Sequence record: OR620964.1 | Strand: one strand, 5' to 3' | Length of the DNA stretch: 64,000 nucleotides | In this document: positions 5,005-56,883 of the stretch, piece after piece | How positions within the stretch are numbered: the first letter of the stretch is position 1 | Layout of the letters: each line of letters starts with the position of its first letter | Made by a program: the position numbers and the translations under genes | The notes under the pieces: generated by a model | Told to the model about the DNA's origin: nothing | Databases searched by the model: none | The model's input: the letters and a program-made list of their open reading frames with translations, nothing else

Positions 5005-5314
5005 ATTTGTTTGGACAGTCAAGCACTTGCTTCCGTTTGGCGTAGAATGATGGAGGTGCTGATCCAATGACAATACCAAGATTACACAGCTTGGCTTTGA
5101 CCCTGCTAACATTTAAGGACACACCACTGACATTAGTTAAAAAGCTAGATGCGAAATCACCACACAGGTGCAGCGTATGACCGTAATAAGGTTGATTCAG
5201 CTTTTTCTGTGTACGAGCAATAAGTGCCTGTATTGTTTTCGTATCTTCCTTAGTAACAGCTCTACCGCAGTACACATCAACATTCAACATTGTCATTAAT
5301 AAAGGCTTGCCCAT
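5003..5314 (-). CDS. Hypothetical protein (~100 aa)
   Basis: ORF in operon; exact start uncertain. Confidence 0.5.
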   Translation of the reverse strand: MGKPLLMTMLNVDVYCGRAVTKEDTKTIQALIARTQKKLNQPYYGHTLHLCGDFASSFLTNVSGVSLNVSRVKAKLCNLGIVIGSAPPSFYAKRKQVLDCPNK

Positions 5315-5930
5315 CTATTGCTCCAGCGTGGTTAACTACGTACTCGATATAGTACGGTGTCATGCCTAAGGCACGAGTATGATCGGAAATGCTGACACAT
5401 AGAGCATCAGCATTGAATACGAATTTACGCTCTAGATATAAGATATCAGGAACGTCTTGTCTATCCGTCACAACTTCATGGCCGTTAAGAATCCCGTTCT
5501 GGAAATCAAACAGTGCGATTCTACGCATATTGCCAACAGGCACCTGCATCGAGCGAAGTATATTCATGCCCTCGCATTCTTCGACAGTATACACCGATAC
5601 TCTTGTACTGAAATAAGAGGATAGGTGATTGCTAAGAGCATCACTAACCAATCCAATACGAGAAAGATCTTGGCTTACAATCTCAAGCCCAAAGCCATAG
5701 TATGGCATACTGAAATGCTCAAAATTGGCTATGGAACTATCGGCATCTAAGTGCATAGGCTGGTCGAAGAATACAAAAGCATTCTGTGCAACGAACTGCT
5801 GTATCTTTACAGCTCGCGATCCAGATTCTATCAAGTTGTCGAACTGGACAACAAACTCCATGTTACGTACCGCAGGCATACCTTCCTTTATATACGTAAC
5901 ACGTTGGGTAAATTGGTGTACAGTGCGCAT
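5277..5930 (-). CDS. Hypothetical protein (217 aa)
   Basis: ORF in operon. Confidence 0.65.
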   Translation of the reverse strand: MRTVHQFTQRVTYIKEGMPAVRNMEFVVQFDNLIESGSRAVKIQQFVAQNAFVFFDQPMHLDADSSIANFEHFSMPYYGFGLEIVSQDLSRIGLVSDALSNHLSSYFSTRVSVYTVEECEGMNILRSMQVPVGNMRRIALFDFQNGILNGHEVVTDRQDVPDILYLERKFVFNADALCVSISDHTRALGMTPYYIEYVVNHAGAIDGQAFINDNVEC

Positions 5931-5939
5931 ATCATGCCC

Positions 5940-6650
5940 TTACTTTCCAATATACTGGTTGGCGAAGAACGCCTCATTGTTAAAGAACTCTTCGAGCACT
6001 GTGTAGTCCAATGTGCCTACACCTACATGGCGCACAATACCTTGCTCAGGCGATAGACCTATATCCAGTATAGGATCGCAGCCAGGCACGATATCTTGGA
6101 TAATGAATATTGTCTGCCCTTTATACTCTTCCTTATCCGTAGATAACCAATGAGAGTGCATAGAACTATCAAGCTCAATGATATACACAAGAGCAAGGTG
6201 CTTGGCAGGTGTCTGCACTGTACTATGACCGAAGATATTCTCCAGTACATCTGCATGTGGGTTATCTAGAATAGTGATCTCAAGATCAGCAAAAGCCATA
6301 GGAAGAATATCAGTTAGCCAGGATTCAACGCTACAGCAAATGCAACTATATTTATCTTCCGCACTGGCTTTAATGAATGGAATCTTTCTGGCAAGAGGCT
6401 TTGAGAAAGTTAGTGTGAAGTGTTGGCTAGAAATAGTATACTTGCCCTCTTCTTCATGTTCTTCAACTTCATCATCATTGTCAAAATAGAAGATACTATT
6501 TGTGAGACACATCAGCGCCATGTTCATCCTCTCCAGGTTAGAAGCGTGATGCTCCTTAGTGCCGGATGAGGTGACACGCACATATGCATCTGTTAACTTA
6601 CCATTTACTATGTGCGTAATATTTACGTTCTGCGAAACAATGATATTCAT
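5940..6650 (-). CDS. Hypothetical protein (236 aa)
   Basis: ORF in operon downstream of the spike gene. Confidence 0.65.
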   Translation of the reverse strand: MNIIVSQNVNITHIVNGKLTDAYVRVTSSGTKEHHASNLERMNMALMCLTNSIFYFDNDDEVEEHEEEGKYTISSQHFTLTFSKPLARKIPFIKASAEDKYSCICCSVESWLTDILPMAFADLEITILDNPHADVLENIFGHSTVQTPAKHLALVYIIELDSSMHSHWLSTDKEEYKGQTIFIIQDIVPGCDPILDIGLSPEQGIVRHVGVGTLDYTVLEEFFNNEAFFANQYIGK

Positions 6651-6658
6651 GCCGTTTC

Positions 6659-7447
6659 CTAGTTAAGATTGATAGTCTGACCATTGACTGTGTACTCACC
6701 ACCAGCAGTGGTATCGATAGACCCTTTAACATCTAGTATATCTTTTCCATGTACAACAACTTTTCTATCGCCGTATACCTCAGTAGTCTGATTACCTCGG
6801 ACAGACGTATGCTGCGATCCTGCTTTAGCTCCTAAGAGACCAGGAAACTTAGCTCTGTTCTTTGGATCAGGCTTCAATGACTTGACCATATAGTTAGGGT
6901 CATTACGTATATAGTCAGGCACATCATTTTTAGTATCAGTCACAGCAATGGTCTGATTGCCTAGGATTGTCTGAAAGGCATCACCCATTATCACTACATG
7001 CCTATCACCAGGGTATATCACAATCGTCTCATTCGTTGAGCGGTCGTGAATATCCTGCTTACCGCTAGATAGATGATAGCCTATGCGATGAGGATAGTTG
7101 GTTTGGAATTCTGGTAGTTGGTCGGCCTGAGTCATTCGCACATTTGTGCTATACTCACCGGAATAAATGTCACCTGAGGGGAATTTAACACTGATTTTAG
7201 CATTTCGTTGAGGAATGTACTGAGTGCCAAATCGGGTCACCTCATTACCACCTTTATACCCCTCTAGGTGCTCTATAGTAGGCCGTAACCACGGTAGTTG
7301 CTCGTCCGGTATGTCATCCATGATTCCTGCGATACGTGCCCGAACCTGCATAATACGCTGTGGATCATTATTATCTGTTACTATGGCATCATATGACATC
7401 TGGGCATCGATGCCTTTCTTAGAGACATGCCCATTAAGTGGCATCAT
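6659..7447 (-). CDS. Baseplate central spike (T4 gp5 / P2 gpV / VgrG-like OB fold plus beta-helix)
   Basis: AIVTDNNDPQRIMQVRARI...LPWLRP is the typical gp5/gpV OB-fold start. The C-terminus has short V.G/T beta-repeats (VRGNQTTEVYGDRKVVVHG) and ends in INLN. Confidence 0.85.
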   Translation of the reverse strand: MMPLNGHVSKKGIDAQMSYDAIVTDNNDPQRIMQVRARIAGIMDDIPDEQLPWLRPTIEHLEGYKGGNEVTRFGTQYIPQRNAKISVKFPSGDIYSGEYSTNVRMTQADQLPEFQTNYPHRIGYHLSSGKQDIHDRSTNETIVIYPGDRHVVIMGDAFQTILGNQTIAVTDTKNDVPDYIRNDPNYMVKSLKPDPKNRAKFPGLLGAKAGSQHTSVRGNQTTEVYGDRKVVVHGKDILDVKGSIDTTAGGEYTVNGQTINLN

Positions 7448-49833: not shown

Positions 49834-50663
49834 TCCTTAGTTTGCTGTTCAATTAATTCTAAGAGACTAGCGACATGTTTCTCCAAAGTTGCTCGATATG
49901 ACTTTAAGGCAACTTCGTATGAATACAAGTCAGCTACCTCGATTAGTCCCCAGACAGGAAGGCTTTGGTAATTCTCAATCTGGTTACGCAAGATATCACG
50001 ACGCATACGTGCTGCATTGAGTCGCTCAATCAAATTAACTTCTCCATACGGTTTATGGAAAACTTTCTGATAAATTCTTTCCAATAGTCGTAGGTTCAAG
50101 GAATCATATGCAGCCTTAGCTTCGATGAATAGATTAGCGCGTGATGTATTGCCACACTTGTCTGGATGAGTAGCTCTGGCAATTACTAGGTATACCTTCT
50201 TACACTTAGCGGCTATCGTCTTGTGTAGAAGTTCTTCCTGTAACTCTTCTGGTGTTAGTTCTTCCTGATCATACGCCAGTTCTGAAACATCATCATCCTC
50301 ATCTTCACTAGCAACATCTTTGCGTTCCATTGCTTTCTTAAGCTCTTTAGCCTCTTCCTGTTCTTCAAAGTCATCGGAAGCGGCCAAGGCTGCTTGGTGT
50401 TCAATTAGTTTTCGTTTTAACTCACTCAGTTGTGTAGTCAAGTCCATGGTATCACGGGATAAATCCGCTACCATTTCAGTTACGCGTATCTCAGTGAAGT
50501 GAAGTTCTGCCTCAAGACGCTCTACATCCTGTACGATATCAATATAAACATCTGCATCAAATTCATCGGCAGTATGTTCACCGTCAGCGTCAAACAAATC
50601 ATCAGACTCATCCAATACGCTAACATTACTGCCTGTTGGTATAATGGCGAGTTCTGTTTTCAT
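49824..50663 (-). CDS. J-domain (DnaJ-like) co-chaperone with acidic coiled-coil N-terminus
   Basis: KKVYLVIARATHPDK...FIEAKAAYD contains the HPD motif. Confidence 0.85.
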   Translation of the reverse strand: MKTELAIIPTGSNVSVLDESDDLFDADGEHTADEFDADVYIDIVQDVERLEAELHFTEIRVTEMVADLSRDTMDLTTQLSELKRKLIEHQAALAASDDFEEQEEAKELKKAMERKDVASEDEDDDVSELAYDQEELTPEELQEELLHKTIAAKCKKVYLVIARATHPDKCGNTSRANLFIEAKAAYDSLNLRLLERIYQKVFHKPYGEVNLIERLNAARMRRDILRNQIENYQSLPVWGLIEVADLYSYEVALKSYRATLEKHVASLLELIEQQTKEWS

Positions 50664-50857
50664 GAAGGCTTAGTTAACTCCGAGATAGGTTTGGAAAGCA
50701 GCTCACGAATGCGGGCCGGAACATTTGGGTTCTTCTTAAGATTCTTATTAAGCCACTGCAAGTTAGAACCAGATGCACCAACTTCGCTTCGGAATTCGGG
50801 CAAGTCCAATTTGTTTTTATGCGAGTTAAGAAGGGCATTCAATTCGATCAGCATCAT
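50660..50857 (-). CDS. Hypothetical protein (65 aa)
   Basis: Translationally coupled to its neighbours. Confidence 0.55.
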   Translation of the reverse strand: MMLIELNALLNSHKNKLDLPEFRSEVGASGSNLQWLNKNLKKNPNVPARIRELLSKPISELTKPS

Positions 50858-50858
50858 G

Positions 50859-51488
50859 TTAGTTTATTTCCATTAGGTCAAGAATATTCTTAACAACTGT
50901 CTCAGGCCCGATAGACACTGCAATGTTAAGAGGTAAGTGAAGACGTTTAATAAACAACTCAGTTGGGTCTACAGATCCACCTGTGACAACAACACGAGGT
51001 ATATCTCGGAACATTTCCAGTAAGTCACGCAGGCGCTCCATCTTATACTGGGTGCTATCCATAATCACGTTAGTGATAACCAGCATTGAAGGTCGCTGTT
51101 GCTTCAACTTCTCATAGTCGAATCGATCGCCATACAGCGTTACCCATCGTGGCTTGCGTACCTTAGTACCTGCGGCCAATACTGCATTTCTAAATACGTG
51201 GAGCGCTGCGGCTTTGGCCCGCGCATCAGAAGGGAAACTACTTAGAACAGCTATCGGACATCCGTGAAGTGGGTCTTCAAGCAATTCTATAAAATTCTCA
51301 AGTTGAGGAACAACGGCAGTAGTCTTTGTTTTGAAGAATTTATTATTCGTTTTATAAGGCTGCACTGCGTGTTCTAGTTCAAACTCATTCATACCATGAT
51401 ATATTGTATGAGGGTCAGCACCAAGTGCGCGGAGTCTTGCACATACTTCTGGTGGAAAATCAAAGTCAAGCATTGCGCTCTCCTGCAA
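50859..51488 (-). CDS. Hypothetical protein, possibly a degenerate DnaC/IstB-like P-loop fold
   Basis: The alpha/beta order resembles an AAA loader, but no Walker A motif is visible. Confidence 0.4.
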   Translation of the reverse strand: MQESAMLDFDFPPEVCARLRALGADPHTIYHGMNEFELEHAVQPYKTNNKFFKTKTTAVVPQLENFIELLEDPLHGCPIAVLSSFPSDARAKAAALHVFRNAVLAAGTKVRKPRWVTLYGDRFDYEKLKQQRPSMLVITNVIMDSTQYKMERLRDLLEMFRDIPRVVVTGGSVDPTELFIKRLHLPLNIAVSIGPETVVKNILDLMEIN

Positions 51489-52744: not shown

Positions 52745-52854
52745 TAAAATTTCCTCAGGTAATTAACCAGCATATCAATATGCTTGCTAGTCATATGTCG
52801 CTGGCCTACGGTGAGTTGACTTATAGGAATCAAGCCTGGATAGATACCCTGCAT
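52744..52854 (-). CDS. Small 36-aa ORF missing from the ORF track (MQGIYPGLIPISQLTVGQRHMTSKHIDMLVNYLRKF)
   Basis: Fills the intergenic gap and ends in a TAATG overlap with the next gene; weak SD. Confidence 0.4.
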   Translation of the reverse strand: MQGIYPGLIPISQLTVGQRHMTSKHIDMLVNYLRKF

Positions 52855-52860
52855 TACCAA

Positions 52861-53229
52861 TTACGTTGTCTGTGTGTTGCGCTTAGATGCCTCACTTGAT
52901 TCAAGAACAACGCCCAGGAACTTCCAGCGCATTGGAGCAGCAGGGTGCACAAGATCAACAGGTTCGATGCGGTCCCACGTCACTAAACGTATCGTATTAC
53001 CCAGTGTCTCCATTAAGTCCCTAGGAACATCAGCCTCATATTCCGTATAGGTTGCACTGACAGTGCTCGTGGCAGCACCTTTTACGAACGCCGTCACTAC
53101 TATATCAAGACGAGCCGCACTCGGACCAACAATAGCACGAGGAACAATAGTGAATCCTGCGTGTCTTAAAGCAGAGCACATGATATGTTCAAAGTCATTA
53201 TGACCTACGGCACTATTAATCACGTCCAT
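52861..53229 (-). CDS. Hypothetical protein (122 aa)
   Basis: TAATG coupling to the helicase C-half. Confidence 0.6.
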   Translation of the reverse strand: MDVINSAVGHNDFEHIMCSALRHAGFTIVPRAIVGPSAARLDIVVTAFVKGAATSTVSATYTEYEADVPRDLMETLGNTIRLVTWDRIEPVDLVHPAAPMRWKFLGVVLESSEASKRNTQTT

Positions 53230-54239
53230 TAAAATTTCCTCAGACCAAGAGCGCGTGGTTGGCCTTTCTTAACTGTTGATGGTTCGAAGTAGTCTGGCAT
53301 TTCATTACCATACAACTCTTCCTTATCTACTATGCCCATCCAATTACGTAGCTTCTTAGGTGTACGTTTCGCTTTGGCATATCCCAGCTTCCAGCACATC
53401 TTAAGCACAGACCGAGCAAAGCCCATTGATTTTTCCATGTTAGGATCAATGAACATACGAATAACAGGAGTTCTCTTATTCTCCATAGGAGTTAAGATAC
53501 GGCAGGACTCTTGCTTCCAGTTAGGCTCGTTATTCATAGGCATGATGTAGTATAACGTATCCCACTTAGGTACGTTAAGTCCACGTTGCATCAGTCTGCG
53601 CATACCGATGACACAACGAATATCACCAGCACGGGCAGCATCCACAATAGGCTTACGTCGCTTGGCTTCTTTCGCACCACCAAGGAATACAGCAGCAATC
53701 TCTTCTGTATAGTGCTCATTAATTCTACTGCATAGATCACGCGCCTGCTCGGTAAACATAATAGGTATTGCAATGCTACGTCCAGCATCAAGATCTTTTA
53801 TAATCCACTCGAAGATCTTGTCATTACGTTGTTTATGGTTGGCAAGAAACTTACAGAATCGCATCCAACCAGCTTTACCAGTATACTGATTGCGCGAGTG
53901 TACTTTAGTGCTGGTCTTATGGATAGTTATCTTGGGCACAAGTTCTTTCACAAAGGCTTTTGCGACAACTGGACCCATAATACTCTCCACAATCCATTGG
54001 CGTCCATCTTTCCTGACTGGAGTCGCTGTCAGACCGTAACGAAACTTCATTCTCATGTTAGCAAGCGTTCTACTGAAACAGGCAGCATTTGCGCTGTGGC
54101 AATTGTGAACTAGAACGCCTTCATCAGAATCTTTTGGATACACATAGAAGTTATGATTATGCTCAATTCCTATGTCAAATACTTCTGTATCCTCACATTC
54201 AAAAACATCTACTTTTGAGACTTTCATTATAATTTCCAT
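53229..54239 (-). CDS. Split-intein C-fragment fused to SF2 (UvsW-like) helicase C-extein
   Basis: N-terminal 46 aa ending VFDIGIEHNHNF...VLVHN, then C-H completing DE-CH. Helicase motifs III (TATP), V (MQRGLNVP) and a VI-like QESCRI follow. Confidence 0.92.
   Translation of the reverse strand: MEIIMKVSKVDVFECEDTEVFDIGIEHNHNFYVYPKDSDEGVLVHNCHSANAACFSRTLANMRMKFRYGLTATPVRKDGRQWIVESIMGPVVAKAFVKELVPKITIHKTSTKVHSRNQYTGKAGWMRFCKFLANHKQRNDKIFEWIIKDLDAGRSIAIPIMFTEQARDLCSRINEHYTEEIAAVFLGGAKEAKRRKPIVDAARAGDIRCVIGMRRLMQRGLNVPKWDTLYYIMPMNNEPNWKQESCRILTPMENKRTPVIRMFIDPNMEKSMGFARSVLKMCWKLGYAKAKRTPKKLRNWMGIVDKEELYGNEMPDYFEPSTVKKGQPRALGLRKF
54102..54239 (-). mobile_element. Split intein, IntC (46 aa)
   Basis: Block F (VFDIGIEHNHNFY) and block G (LVHN|C), with +1 Cys at 54099-54101. 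Confidence 0.92.
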
Positions 54240-54271
54240 TAGCCGAATGAGACTGTATCAAAACTGATAGG

Positions 54272-54280
54272 TATTTACAG
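54272..54280 (-). promoter_or_regulatory. CTGTAAATA motif, copy 4 (upstream of IntC-helicase)
   Basis: Exact match 33 nt upstream of the start, in the 42-nt divergent gap. Confidence 0.65.
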
Positions 54281-54281
54281 A

Positions 54282-55340
54282 ATGGATAACAGAACAAAAC
54301 CGTTTAAAGATGACTTAAAATCGCATGGTAGAACTTACGGATTCAAAGTGATTGAATATGGACGCACTAAAGTATCTAAAGATACATCAATCAAGTGCAA
54401 GTGCGGAGCTATTGAGGTGAGGGCAGCGCAAGCCATTCTCAAATCATTTGCCGGATGTACTACATGCCGTAAAGAAAGAATGCATCAAGCTCAATCTGAT
54501 ATTAAGAAAGGCAAGCAGCCACACAATACAAAAACAGAGGCAGAATACAAAGCGCAACTAGCAGAGCGCAATCCTACGATGAAATTAGTAGGTGCGTATG
54601 TGAACACTCACACAAAGACTCGGCATATGTGTACTATATGCAAACATGAACAGGAGTACAGGCCACTAAACATATTGAGGCTAGGATGCAGAAATTGCGC
54701 AGGGTTAGTTCCAAAATCAGCAGACTCGTATAACCAAGAGCTACTGAAAAAGAATATACCTTTCGTAATAACAAAATATTTAGGGTCGAGAACGATAACG
54801 GAACATACTTGCACTCGCTGCCTTGAGTTTAAAACAATGTGCTCTCCTACGAATGCCCTAAAAGAAGGTAAACTACGCTGCATTTCTTGCGATGAAAGTA
54901 TGATGTACTCCATTGAGATAGCAGGGAGGGAGTTCAAAGTTAGAGGATACGAGCGCTATGCACTTCCACATATCGTAAATAGATTTGGAATTAAGAATGT
55001 TATCTGCGATTCAGATAGACGAGTCCCAGTAATAGATCTAGGTAAGGGTAAGAAACATCGTCCAGACTTCTACATTCCTAATGCCAATCTTTTGATTGAA
55101 GTTAAATCCTTAACTACAGCAGGTTTAGGGGGTATTTATTTCAATCACACTCCAGATGCGCTATTTAGAAATATCAAGCGCAAGAAAAAGAAAGCAGTAG
55201 CACAAGGATATACCTACATGCTACTGCTTATATCCAATACTGGACTACAGATAAAACTACCTAAAGATTGGGAGTCTTACAGCAGATCAGAATTGAAGTC
55301 TTTAGTTAAATCTAAATCGTCATCCTCCGTTAGCAACTGA
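54282..55340 (+). mobile_element. Free-standing putative homing endonuclease (zinc-ribbon repeats plus PD-(D/E)xK nuclease), inverted within the fractured helicase gene
   Basis: Three Cys-cluster repeats (CKC..CTTC, CTIC..CRNC, CTRC..CISC) and a C-terminal HRPDFYIPNANLLIEVKS. It is the only credible plus-strand gene. Confidence 0.82.
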
Positions 55341-55594
55341 GCTTCAACATAGTCTCCACGAGTATTTGACCAGAACAAGTGAGTAGGTGTGCAAACAATT
55401 TCTTTGTCACCTACTGTAACACGACACATCTTCCTTACAGTCTTTTTCGTTCGAGATTCAATAGGTCTGAATTCCTGCTCACCTGTATCCAGATTTTTAG
55501 ACAAAACAGAGAATGGCATAGCATTACCTTCAACAATATCTGCGATATCAATCAAACCCTGTTCCGTCATAACCCGATGTCCGCGAGTGAAACA
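55277..55594 (-). mobile_element. Split intein, IntN (105 aa)
   Basis: Cys1 at codon 245 (55592-55594), block A (CFTRGHRVMTEQG), block B (IVCTPTHLFW, TxxH) and an acidic tail. Confidence 0.92.
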
Positions 55595-56326
55595 TTCATC
55601 GACAAATATAGTACCAAAGTTTTCATTCAACATCTGCATACGCTTACGCGCAACTTTTGTATCTTGAATCAAAGACTGGTACGTAACAAGAATGATTTGA
55701 AAGTCTTTATAGTCCTGGTCTTTCTTTGGAAAACCAAATAGCTTCTTACCATGCTCTTCCTCAAGGTCAGGGAGATTGGTCATCTGCTCTATTGTCTCAT
55801 AGAAGCCATCAAGAAAGTCTTTCTGGTCAGCCATGATAATTGTTTTATAGCCAGTAGATATACCACCAGCTATACCCATCACGGTTTTTCCACTACGTGG
55901 AGGAGCTTGTAGCAATCCACACAACTCATCCAGCAATTCTTTTGATGGAGCTACTTGGTAATCACGTAAGGACGCAGTAAACTCAACGTCATAATCAAAT
56001 GGTGTTCTATTCGTTAAATTCTTAAACTTAACTTTCTTTGGATTCAATCCTGTTGTGGATTGGAAGCGATGCATTTCACCATAAGGTATAGTCACATGCT
56101 TCTTATCATTAATAGTTGTGTATGAGGCTAGGGCTGTTACGCCAATCAAGCCTCCTTTATCGCAAGAACGACATTCTCCGCTTGGACGCTCTGGCCTGAA
56201 CTCGCAATTACGACACACGGCATCATCAAACTCATGCCGAGTCAGGCGCTTAATTATTTTTCCAGCATCTACAATTTTAATTGGAATATGCAGACGACTA
56301 TCGACAATTACCGTAGGTTTGGCCAC
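55277..56326 (-). CDS. SF2 (UvsW-like) helicase N-extein fused to split-intein N-fragment
   Basis: Q motif LRDYQ, Walker A APPRSGKT, TYQSL and IFVDE, followed by intein block A CFTRGHRVMT; ends at a stop after 105 intein residues. Confidence 0.93.
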   Translation of the reverse strand: MAKPTVIVDSRLHIPIKIVDAGKIIKRLTRHEFDDAVCRNCEFRPERPSGECRSCDKGGLIGVTALASYTTINDKKHVTIPYGEMHRFQSTTGLNPKKVKFKNLTNRTPFDYDVEFTASLRDYQVAPSKELLDELCGLLQAPPRSGKTVMGIAGGISTGYKTIIMADQKDFLDGFYETIEQMTNLPDLEEEHGKKLFGFPKKDQDYKDFQIILVTYQSLIQDTKVARKRMQMLNENFGTIFVDECFTRGHRVMTEQGLIDIADIVEGNAMPFSVLSKNLDTGEQEFRPIESRTKKTVRKMCRVTVGDKEIVCTPTHLFWSNTRGDYVEAQLLTEDDDLDLTKDFNSDLL

Positions 56327-56328
56327 TT

Positions 56329-56883
56329 TTACTTCCTTTGATTCGGCAACCCATATTCGCGTCGTTCGATAAGGGCCAAGATTTCTGTAAGTGATTTGAA
56401 TGCGAAGCCTGCTTTATCGATATCTTTTAAGTAAAAATCAATCTCTTCTTTTAAGAGAGTTAGATTATCACTGTATCGATAATACTCGGCCATTATATTG
56501 CGTACCATACGCTCACGCTCTTTCGCAGCACCAAGGGCTTTGAGATCTCGCGAATACGTAACCGTTGCATAGTCTTGAAAACGCTCTAACATATCAGCCA
56601 ATGCTTTAATTGCTGAGTTTGTTTGCACGTATATCTCGGTCATGCGGCTACGATAGGCTTGGTCTTCTATCACTGAATTAGCGAGTTTGTTCAATGCGTT
56701 GGGATGGTCTATGTTAAGTGTACGAATTTTACGCATACGAAACATCTGCTGGCATTCCGTTCTATACTCATCAACCGTTAGCTGAAACAATGGATTGGTT
56801 TTATACAGTTTACGGATGCGCTTATACCGTTCATCTGACTTAACTTTCTTCGTTAAGCGAGAAATATCATCGAGCGCCATCAA
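56329..56883 (-). CDS. Helical protein, possibly UvsY-like recombination mediator
   Basis: Coiled-coil protein next to a UvsW-like helicase. The C-terminal IDFYLKDIDKAGFAFKSL loosely recalls UvsY. Confidence 0.4.
   Translation of the reverse strand: MMALDDISRLTKKVKSDERYKRIRKLYKTNPLFQLTVDEYRTECQQMFRMRKIRTLNIDHPNALNKLANSVIEDQAYRSRMTEIYVQTNSAIKALADMLERFQDYATVTYSRDLKALGAAKERERMVRNIMAEYYRYSDNLTLLKEEIDFYLKDIDKAGFAFKSLTEILALIERREYGLPNQRK

Follow-up and report, generated by a model that had tools for sequence, protein, structure and literature searches.

The window analysed here (64,000 nucleotides) is 100% identical to the first 64 kb of OR620964.1, the 248.7-kb genome of a Yersinia phage named fHe-Yen9-02 that infects Y. 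enterocolitica O:9. It contains a helicase gene broken in two by a split intein, and between the N-terminal (IntN) and C-terminal (IntC) halves of this intein lies, in antisense orientation, a gene annotated as encoding a hypothetical protein. We favour, with moderate confidence, the view that this gene encodes a modular free-standing homing endonuclease that would spread the whole IntN-endonuclease-IntC cassette by way of intein-less helicase alleles. Several hallmarks of homing endonucleases are found at the locus, since the gene belongs to an intervening element of a conserved gene, this element is sporadic among close relatives, and intact empty sites exist. That the element is active and mobile is further suggested by purifying selection on the nuclease, by sequence anomalies localised at the junction, and by a tract of recent recombination.

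In the mechanism that we propose, three CapR/DUF4379-like modules with four cysteines each (Cys4) would bind a long DNA site and the tethered DUF7487 domain (E224, D262, E273, and K275) would cut it. During a mixed infection, the cut would fall in the uninterrupted helicase gene of a related phage, in or near the sequence coding for motif II (DE|CH, the bar marking the junction), and recombinational repair from the occupied allele would copy the 1,493-bp cassette (54102-55594) into the cut gene. The carrier allele would be immune because the cassette splits the target, and the host phage would survive because trans-splicing rejoins the helicase halves after translation, Cys1, the block B TxxH, the terminal His-Asn, and Cys+1 all being present. 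Here we infer both the cleavage and its position, as well as the mode of transcription of the antisense gene.

A conserved helicase gene broken by a split intein

Alignment with the uninterrupted 534-aa helicases of the Erwinia phages Yoloswag and pEa_SNUABM_22 places the break at motif II (DE|CH) of a superfamily 2 (SF2) XPB/ResIII-like helicase, and both intein models score above their cut-offs (NCBIfam intein_Nterm, 24.6 for a cut-off of 24.5; intein_Cterm, 24.8 for a cut-off of 15.6). On these grounds the description of the locus in the first-pass annotation was accurate, and the joined junction that it gave (GTC GAT GAA | TGC CAC AGC) is correct. The characteristic residues of class 1 split inteins (CFT..., CTPTH, and VLVHN|C) are found in the window and in all related loci, and in having a conserved enzyme gene that such an intein divides into two parts, the locus agrees with the fractured genes of Dassa 2009. 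From the viability of the cultured phage and the conservation of the helicase in 84 phage records, we infer that protein trans-splicing produces the ligated helicase.

The residue that follows DE in motif II varies among helicases uninterrupted at this point (DECH in pEa_SNUABM_22, DEVH in Yoloswag, and DEIH in the Dickeya phages JA29 and JA33), and entry into alleles with Val or Ile would require co-conversion of the +1 codon to Cys. The annotated IntC start codon (54239) lies four codons upstream of a second ATG (54227) that aligns with the start codons of three related loci (L007, L015, and L016); translation may therefore begin there and give an IntC of 42 aa.

Predicted nuclease domain and zinc-ribbon modules

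The PD...EVK motif noticed earlier near the C-terminus is confirmed. Twelve homologues, the most distant with 26% identity, all retain E224, P261-D262, and E273-x-K275, as does another set of 12 sequences. The protein matches phrog_559 (1e-15), its Pfam and PHROG matches being to DUF7487 and to endonuclease families, and several relatives exceed the threshold of the family DUF7487 (JA33, 66.1; GR7B, 64; PaBG, 50.5; P0009, 52.8; and L058, 134.7 bits). In the AlphaFold model (mean predicted local distance difference test, pLDDT, of 84 for the whole protein and 93 for the nuclease domain), the domain opens with a helix that has E224 at its start; four strands come next, then another helix and a last strand, a topology that fits the alpha-beta-beta-beta-alpha-beta core of the superfamily. 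PD and ExK are carried on strands of the sheet after the first helix, which is the canonical PD-(D/E)xK arrangement. The weak structural matches in the PDB are mostly PD-(D/E)xK enzymes (Vsr, PvuRts1I, cap-snatching endonucleases, and RecE), and the matches among the predicted viral structures of BFVD include a ‘putative homing endonuclease’ of PaBG (1e-12, TM-score 0.83), DUF7487 proteins, giant-virus ‘Vsr/MutH/HJR-family’ nucleases, and a restriction endonuclease. Sequence and profile searches of the PDB returned chance-level matches only (RPB9 zinc ribbons, 0.029; T7 endonuclease I, 1.3), and NCBIfam gave no match for the endonuclease.

The N-terminal region contains the three Cys4 repeats that had been described from the translation as zinc-ribbon-like and about 55 aa long; they measure about 57-61 aa, can be aligned with one another, and the first has CxC in place of the first CxxC. 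In the third, C177, C200, and C203 are invariant and C180 is found in at least 90% of 12 sequences. By BLASTP, the repeats match (2e-11) the repeated modules of a ‘VSR homing endonuclease’ of the Staphylococcus phage phiIPLA-RODI (Kayvirus), which is encoded by a group I intron in the terminase gene. That enzyme and the JA33 homologue of the window protein both match DUF4379 (‘treble clef zinc finger’; 1.5e-14 for JA33) and the CapR homology domain, and close homologues of the window protein have precomputed DUF723 matches. With a limit of E ≤0.001, the window protein has matches in about 2,055 clusters (50% identity), many of which align through the zinc-ribbon repeats alone. These matches suggest that the window repeats belong with the CapR/DUF4379/DUF723 modules. 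Sequence-specific DNA binding dependent on four cysteines has been demonstrated experimentally for CapR (PMC8096241), and many phage homing endonucleases are described as binding DNA through arrays of CapR, DUF723, and DUF4379 modules (PMC10448857); by analogy, the window repeats probably bind zinc and DNA. The fusion of DUF7487 to CapR-like modules suggests a type of modular PD-(D/E)xK homing enzyme that has no characterised member.

Distribution of the cassette among related phages

The same inverted cassette occupies DE|C in nine loci, namely the window and the metagenomic contigs L007, L008, L009, L011, L015, L016, L098, and L099, with the endonuclease gene always antisense between an N-half gene (helicase and IntN) and a C-half gene (IntC and helicase), despite helicases that are mutually only 35-75% identical. 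An antisense endonuclease gene overlapping the 3' end of IntN is also found in ten related loci. In a comparison of eight loci the overlap ranged over 32-69 nt; for L098 and L099 the gene coordinates give about 18 nt. All relatives with at least 35% whole-protein identity and a readable context reside in the helicase intein, as do L098 and L099, two further members of the same tree clade. The Dickeya phages JA11 and JA33 have the same architecture, deeply diverged, in an intein inserted 39 codons downstream of DE|CH, at RKD|C (hereafter site B, DE|CH being site A). Across all eleven loci the endonuclease ORFs (open reading frames) are intact and 289-375 aa long. Among the 84 phage records, the helicase is interrupted only in fHe-Yen9-02 and JA11/JA33; an uninterrupted helicase is found in about 50 related Erwinia and Dickeya phages, including JA29 and JA13, and a single host strain is given in the records of both the occupied JA33 and the empty JA29.

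The endonuclease ORF of JA33 (L004:3300-4427, 375 aa) is located between two coding sequences called ‘putative DNA repair helicase’, and the GenBank records of JA33 and JA11 carry no annotation for it. A single composite element could have jumped from site A to site B, but the comparison does not support this: the JA33 endonuclease falls, on a long branch, outside the well-supported site-A clade, and the JA33 IntN is only 37% identical.

The first-pass annotation had named occurrence at unrelated loci, independently of the intein, as evidence against homing; this refuting condition does not arise, as only distant relatives (≤32% identity) are found elsewhere. Of these free-standing relatives, PaBG_00189 (L006:3486-4310) is antisense to both flanking genes, between those for SbcD and a DHH phosphoesterase, in a genome with two matches to the endonuclease, and GR7B_00096 (L005:3471-4316) sits at a divergent junction, antisense to the upstream genes and on the same strand as the next three. 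One more, P0009, is on the same strand as its neighbours. In OR620964.1 the endonuclease gene gives a single match in the genome, with no paralogues.

Selection and recombination

The endonuclease gene is under purifying selection, with ratios of nonsynonymous to synonymous substitution rates (dN/dS) of 0.11 (L008/L015) and 0.19 (L007/L016). Between distant lineages the intein halves are 58-60% identical, compared with 35-42% for the exteins, and the endonuclease is about as conserved as the helicase. Empty alleles are 90-93% identical to occupied ones, and two such pairs depart from their background around the junction. The empty helicase of pEa_SNUABM_22 shares 93% protein identity with the occupied one of L008, and their DNA is identical over 60 nt spanning the junction, with 0/48 differences within eight codons on either side versus 16.4% elsewhere (p = 4e-4). 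JA33 and JA29, occupied and empty, respectively, have about 91% DNA identity, and their divergence reaches 42%, mostly synonymous, within eight codons on either side of the junction versus 7.3% elsewhere (p = 1.5e-10), as would be expected from target-site divergence or from a short co-conversion tract derived from a diverged donor.

A third signal concerns L008 and L015, which share a block of about 245 nt (L008:3832-4075) that is 97-100% identical amid a background of 70-80%. It runs from IntC across the spacer into the endonuclease gene, of which it takes in the first 70 nt, and one of its edges coincides with the border between IntC and the C-extein. Regulatory constraint was considered as its source and rejected because other pairs lack such a block over the 5' end of the endonuclease gene; for the same reason, we interpret the block as a recent recombination tract between two phage lineages. 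Gene conversion with cutting of empty alleles would be recorded through indirect traces only, namely the junction-localised divergence and the recombination tract.

Evidence against homing and alternative explanations

Several observations weigh against a homing endonuclease that acts on empty helicase alleles. The window protein, through its C-terminal 140 residues, scores 26.5 bits with DUF7487 (PF24308), just below the 27-bit gathering threshold, and has no direct Pfam match to CapR, DUF4379, or any zinc-finger family. Foldseek searches of the PDB with the full model and with the isolated domain yielded no significant match (best E 7e-3, TM-score ≤0.41), so the assignment to the fold rests on motif, topology, and viral predicted structures; of the check by structure prediction recommended in the first-pass annotation, topology and residue placement agree with PD-(D/E)xK and the structural matches in the PDB stay below significance. 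We found no biochemical data on any DUF7487 enzyme, and an enzyme with one active site per monomer may nick DNA, rather than cut both strands, unless it dimerises. Modular homing endonucleases often cut at a distance from their insertion site, so the cut need not fall at DE|CH itself. A scan of 52800-56800 detected no sigma-70-like promoter on the plus strand, and no terminator either; the phage may use promoters of other types. No co-conversion or junction signal was seen between the window phage and its nearest empty alleles, which are about 31% divergent in DNA. Finally, a contiguous mini-intein devoid of endonuclease occupies the same site in one metagenomic contig, L097 (882-2903; ENA ERZ27280223, k141_2021669).

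This mini-intein, 141 aa long and placed exactly at DE|CH of an orthologous helicase, bears on an explanation that we regard as unlikely, although it fares best among the alternatives: the enzyme would target the intein, at a site in the B/F loop of a contiguous or split endonuclease-free mini-intein, and would fracture intein-bearing alleles, the spread of the intein into empty helicases being a separate, older, or indirect process. In its N-terminal part, the L097 intein is 61% identical to the IntN of L009, whereas the helicases are only 32-36% identical, and the split point of the fractured versions maps to the block B/F loop of L097. The L008/L015 tract, formed by IntC and the 5' end of the endonuclease gene, stops at the extein border, and the JA33 site-B cassette keeps the same internal architecture with a deeply diverged intein and endonuclease, as an enzyme directed at the intein would allow. 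Targeting of the intein is also the gene-breaking model, in which an endonuclease gene enters a mini-intein (PMC2677866).

Endonuclease genes have, moreover, invaded this intein family repeatedly, to judge from the varied endonuclease classes (GIY-YIG, HNH, Vsr-like, or none) at the same intein position in IMG/VR and from DUF7487 loci in a different gene. The related IMG/VR inteins are contiguous, split without endonuclease, or split with a co-oriented endonuclease gene. In L067 and L073 the split halves are only about 100 nt apart and enclose no endonuclease gene, resembling the gp41-7 case of the 2009 paper. Co-oriented endonuclease genes occupy the gap in L066, L069, L074, L075, L079, L083, L091, L092, and L093, and by motif the gap ORFs resemble GIY-YIG, HNH, or Vsr-like enzymes, with a few unclassified. 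In two other IMG/VR loci (L035, 1841-4515; L058, 1835-4512), a UvsX/RecA-like gene is split by an intein with a same-strand DUF7487 endonuclease gene, whose product (350 aa, DUF7487 134.7 bits) has an N-terminal region different from that of the window protein. These loci are a second, independent fractured-gene type with a DUF7487 domain, and the presence of DUF7487 nucleases inside this unrelated fractured gene also counts for the homing reading. By this comparison, the antisense layout is specific to the zinc-ribbon/DUF7487 helicase lineage.

Against an enzyme directed at the intein, a single endonuclease-free intein allele stands beside at least ten fractured ones, and none is known in cultured relatives. 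This explanation ranks lower for two reasons: the alleles closest to occupied ones lack the whole intein and not just the endonuclease (L008 versus pEa_SNUABM_22 and JA33 versus JA29), and the patch in which JA33 and JA29 diverge has its centre at the extein junction. The original proposal of cleavage in intein-less alleles at DE|CH is supported in part, by comparison and as regards homing, through the nuclease family and its zinc-ribbon fusion, the purifying selection, and the sporadic cassette, and L097 leaves the intein as a possible target.

The gene might instead serve mainly some other function, the cassette being copied rarely if at all: it could exclude co-infecting relatives by cutting their genomes, or act as a CapR-like DNA-binding regulator. 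CapR-type modules have been domesticated as a repressor (PMC8096241), transcription of a gene that is antisense to the helicase operon and overlaps IntN could affect helicase expression, and strong purifying selection fits any useful function. A pure binding role is nonetheless unlikely because the catalytic residues are invariant; exclusion through cutting of rivals would in practice also yield homing; and the tight, exclusive linkage to the intein, the sporadic occurrence of the whole cassette, and the recombination traces are predictions of homing, which makes this alternative improbable. We give very little credence to an inactive relic of a past invasion, retained since its precise deletion is difficult: homing endonuclease genes commonly decay once fixed, and no close relative lacking the cassette is known for the window phage on its host, but the ORFs are intact in all eleven loci, dN/dS is low in both pairs, and the catalytic and zinc-binding residues are invariant.

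Building on the homing reading, we tentatively suggest, as a possibility rather less likely than that reading itself, that proteins combining zinc ribbons with DUF7487 form a large, biochemically untouched lineage of modular PD-(D/E)xK homing endonucleases, that the helicase-intein branch keeps its antisense, 3'-overlapping layout as a working feature, and that two sites 39 codons apart have been occupied, possibly via a changed zinc-ribbon array. With the gene transcribed convergently to the helicase operon, such a layout could set the timing of nuclease expression or hold it down. If true, the two-site occupancy would be a case of natural endonuclease retargeting open to study in cultured phages.

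Comparison with known systems

The cassette is a variation on the fractured-gene arrangement, from whose 2009 representatives it differs in nuclease class, in its antisense 3'-overlap layout, and in its host gene. As in these (PMC2677866), a split intein interrupts an essential DNA-metabolism gene of a phage at a conserved motif, an endonuclease ORF of its own lies between IntN and IntC, and the split point is the canonical endonuclease insertion loop; the contiguous mini-intein of L097 fits the gene-breaking model of the same work. In the 2009 loci, all three ORFs are on one strand, with spacers of 27-51 nt, the endonucleases are GIY-YIG or Vsr-like (EDxHD), and the host genes, from ocean metagenomes, are gp41, IMPDH, DnaE, NrdA/NrdJ, ligase, and terminase (PMC2677866). 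In contrast, the window endonuclease gene is antisense and overlaps IntN convergently, its product is a predicted DUF7487 nuclease (E...PD...ExK) with three zinc ribbons, and the host gene encodes an SF2 XPB/ResIII-like helicase of cultured Yersinia and Dickeya jumbo phages.

The first-pass annotation had remarked that the layout matches known fractured loci except that those carried Vsr-like nucleases. The match holds for the endonuclease between split-intein halves, not for its strand. The contrast with Vsr holds at the family level because the catalytic domain cannot be aligned with that of a Vsr-type (EDxHD) enzyme; it needs qualifying in two respects, as the 2009 loci also held GIY-YIG enzymes and Vsr shares the fold, being a diverged branch of PD-(D/E)xK. 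The Vsr-type catalytic motifs (E, D, xHD) were not found in the window protein, and BLASTP aligned it with the Kayvirus Vsr-type enzyme in the zinc-ribbon region only, with no alignment of the catalytic domains.

Like I-Bth0305I and the EDxHD enzymes (PMC3239194), the window protein seems to combine an N-terminal DNA-binding region with a C-terminal nuclease of the restriction-endonuclease fold, and the Staphylococcus Kayvirus members of that group have zinc-ribbon modules homologous to its own. Unlike them, it has the motif E...PD...ExK instead of E/D/xHD, with catalytic domains that cannot be aligned, and its family is known from sequence. It shares repeated Cys4 modules joined to a nuclease with the T5orf172/GIY-YIG-type enzymes that carry CapR/DUF723/DUF4379 arrays, which are mostly free-standing beside essential phage genes (PMC8096241, PMC10448857), but its nuclease comes from a different superfamily and an association with inteins is not described in those two papers. 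The canonical PD-(D/E)xK chemistry predicted for the window enzyme is used for homing by I-Ssp6803I, which, according to the summaries in PMC2677866 and PMC6083498, is a small, intron-encoded enzyme devoid of separate DNA-binding modules, unlike the long, modular window enzyme; the PDB searches gave no sequence match of I-Ssp6803I to the latter. As in the collaborative homing of T4-like phages and cyanophages, a free-standing endonuclease is paired with a self-splicing element that interrupts its target and shields the carrier genome from it (PMC2988022, PMC2790892), although the partner here is an intein, not an endonuclease-less intron, and the endonuclease gene is already inside it. Our literature search, in a library with few subscription journals, turned up no paper about this locus, the DUF7487 family, or endonuclease genes lying antisense within split inteins.

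Fractured genes, described from ocean metagenome fragments, have been put forward as the intermediate missing between contiguous inteins, invasion by endonucleases, and inteins that are split in nature. The cassette described here does not overturn current understanding; being present in cultured enterobacterial phages that have cassette-free relatives, it makes homing, trans-splicing, and antisense expression directly measurable. Its split intein (IntN of about 100 aa, IntC of about 42-46 aa, Cys+1) joins the gp41-1/NrdJ-1 family and may serve protein ligation, the same family having reportedly yielded the fast gp41-1 and NrdJ-1 tools.

Organization of the locus

The endonuclease ORF between IntN and IntC is present as first described and is annotated in OR620964.1 (Table 1). 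Its earlier designation as the only credible plus-strand gene is borne out: it is the longest plus-strand ORF of the window, and the others of at least 90 aa are at least 90% covered by longer minus-strand ORFs, with two exceptions, one at 331-609, a stretch for which the record has small minus-strand genes, and one at 50499-50876, about half covered by minus-strand ORFs. Among genes 001-006 and 051-066, its locus tag alone lacks the complement suffix ‘c’. The flanking N-half and C-half genes extend over 55277-56326 and 53229-54239, respectively, both on the minus strand.

Table 1 Features of the fractured helicase locus of phage fHe-Yen9-02 (positions in the window)
Feature	Position	Strand	Description
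Endonuclease gene	54282-55340	+	352 aa; fHeYen902_060 in the record (‘hypothetical protein’); all neighbouring genes lie on the other strand
Zinc-ribbon repeat 1 (predicted)	54294-54473	+	aa 5-64; Cys39, 41, 59, 62; CxC...CxxC; helix and beta-hairpins in the AlphaFold (AF2) model, pLDDT about 90
Zinc-ribbon repeat 2 (predicted)	54537-54707	+	aa 86-142; Cys117, 120, 136, 139; CxxC...CxxC
Zinc-ribbon repeat 3 (predicted)	54717-54899	+	aa 146-206; Cys177, 180, 200, 203; CxxC...CxxC
PD-(D/E)xK nuclease domain, DUF7487-type (predicted)	54894-55319	+	aa 205-346
Catalytic residues (predicted)	54951-54953; 55062-55067; 55098-55106	+	E224; P261-D262; E273-V-K275
Spacer	54240-54281		42 nt between the divergent start codons of IntC and endonuclease; eight-locus comparison
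Convergent overlap	55277-55340		64 nt, 3' end of endonuclease with 3' end of IntN
Helicase N-extein	55595-56326	-	aa 1-244, ends FVDE (motif II); aligned to uninterrupted orthologues; ResIII 1.3e-8
IntN	55280-55594	-	105 aa; Cys1, starts CFT; block B TPTH
IntC	54102-54239	-	46 aa as annotated, ends VLVHN; 42 aa from second ATG (54227)
Helicase C-extein	53229-54101	-	Starts Cys+1-His (CHSANA); 290 aa and stop; Helicase_C and phrog_16 matches

The spacer between the divergent start codons measures 17-63 nt in the eight loci compared and contains a conserved AGG/GGAG about 10-13 nt ahead of the endonuclease ATG. The endonuclease promoter would have to lie inside the DNA coding for IntC, and expression of the C-half would need either transcription that reads through the antisense gene or a promoter located within that gene. 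The acidic tail of IntN, read in antisense, simply yields the Ser-rich tail of the endonuclease.

In one relative, L009, the N-half gene (5028-7382, minus strand) encodes as many as 784 aa because, upstream of the fractured intein, it holds another one that is contiguous (Intein_splicing, 76.7 bits, about aa 248-590); this helicase therefore carries two inteins.

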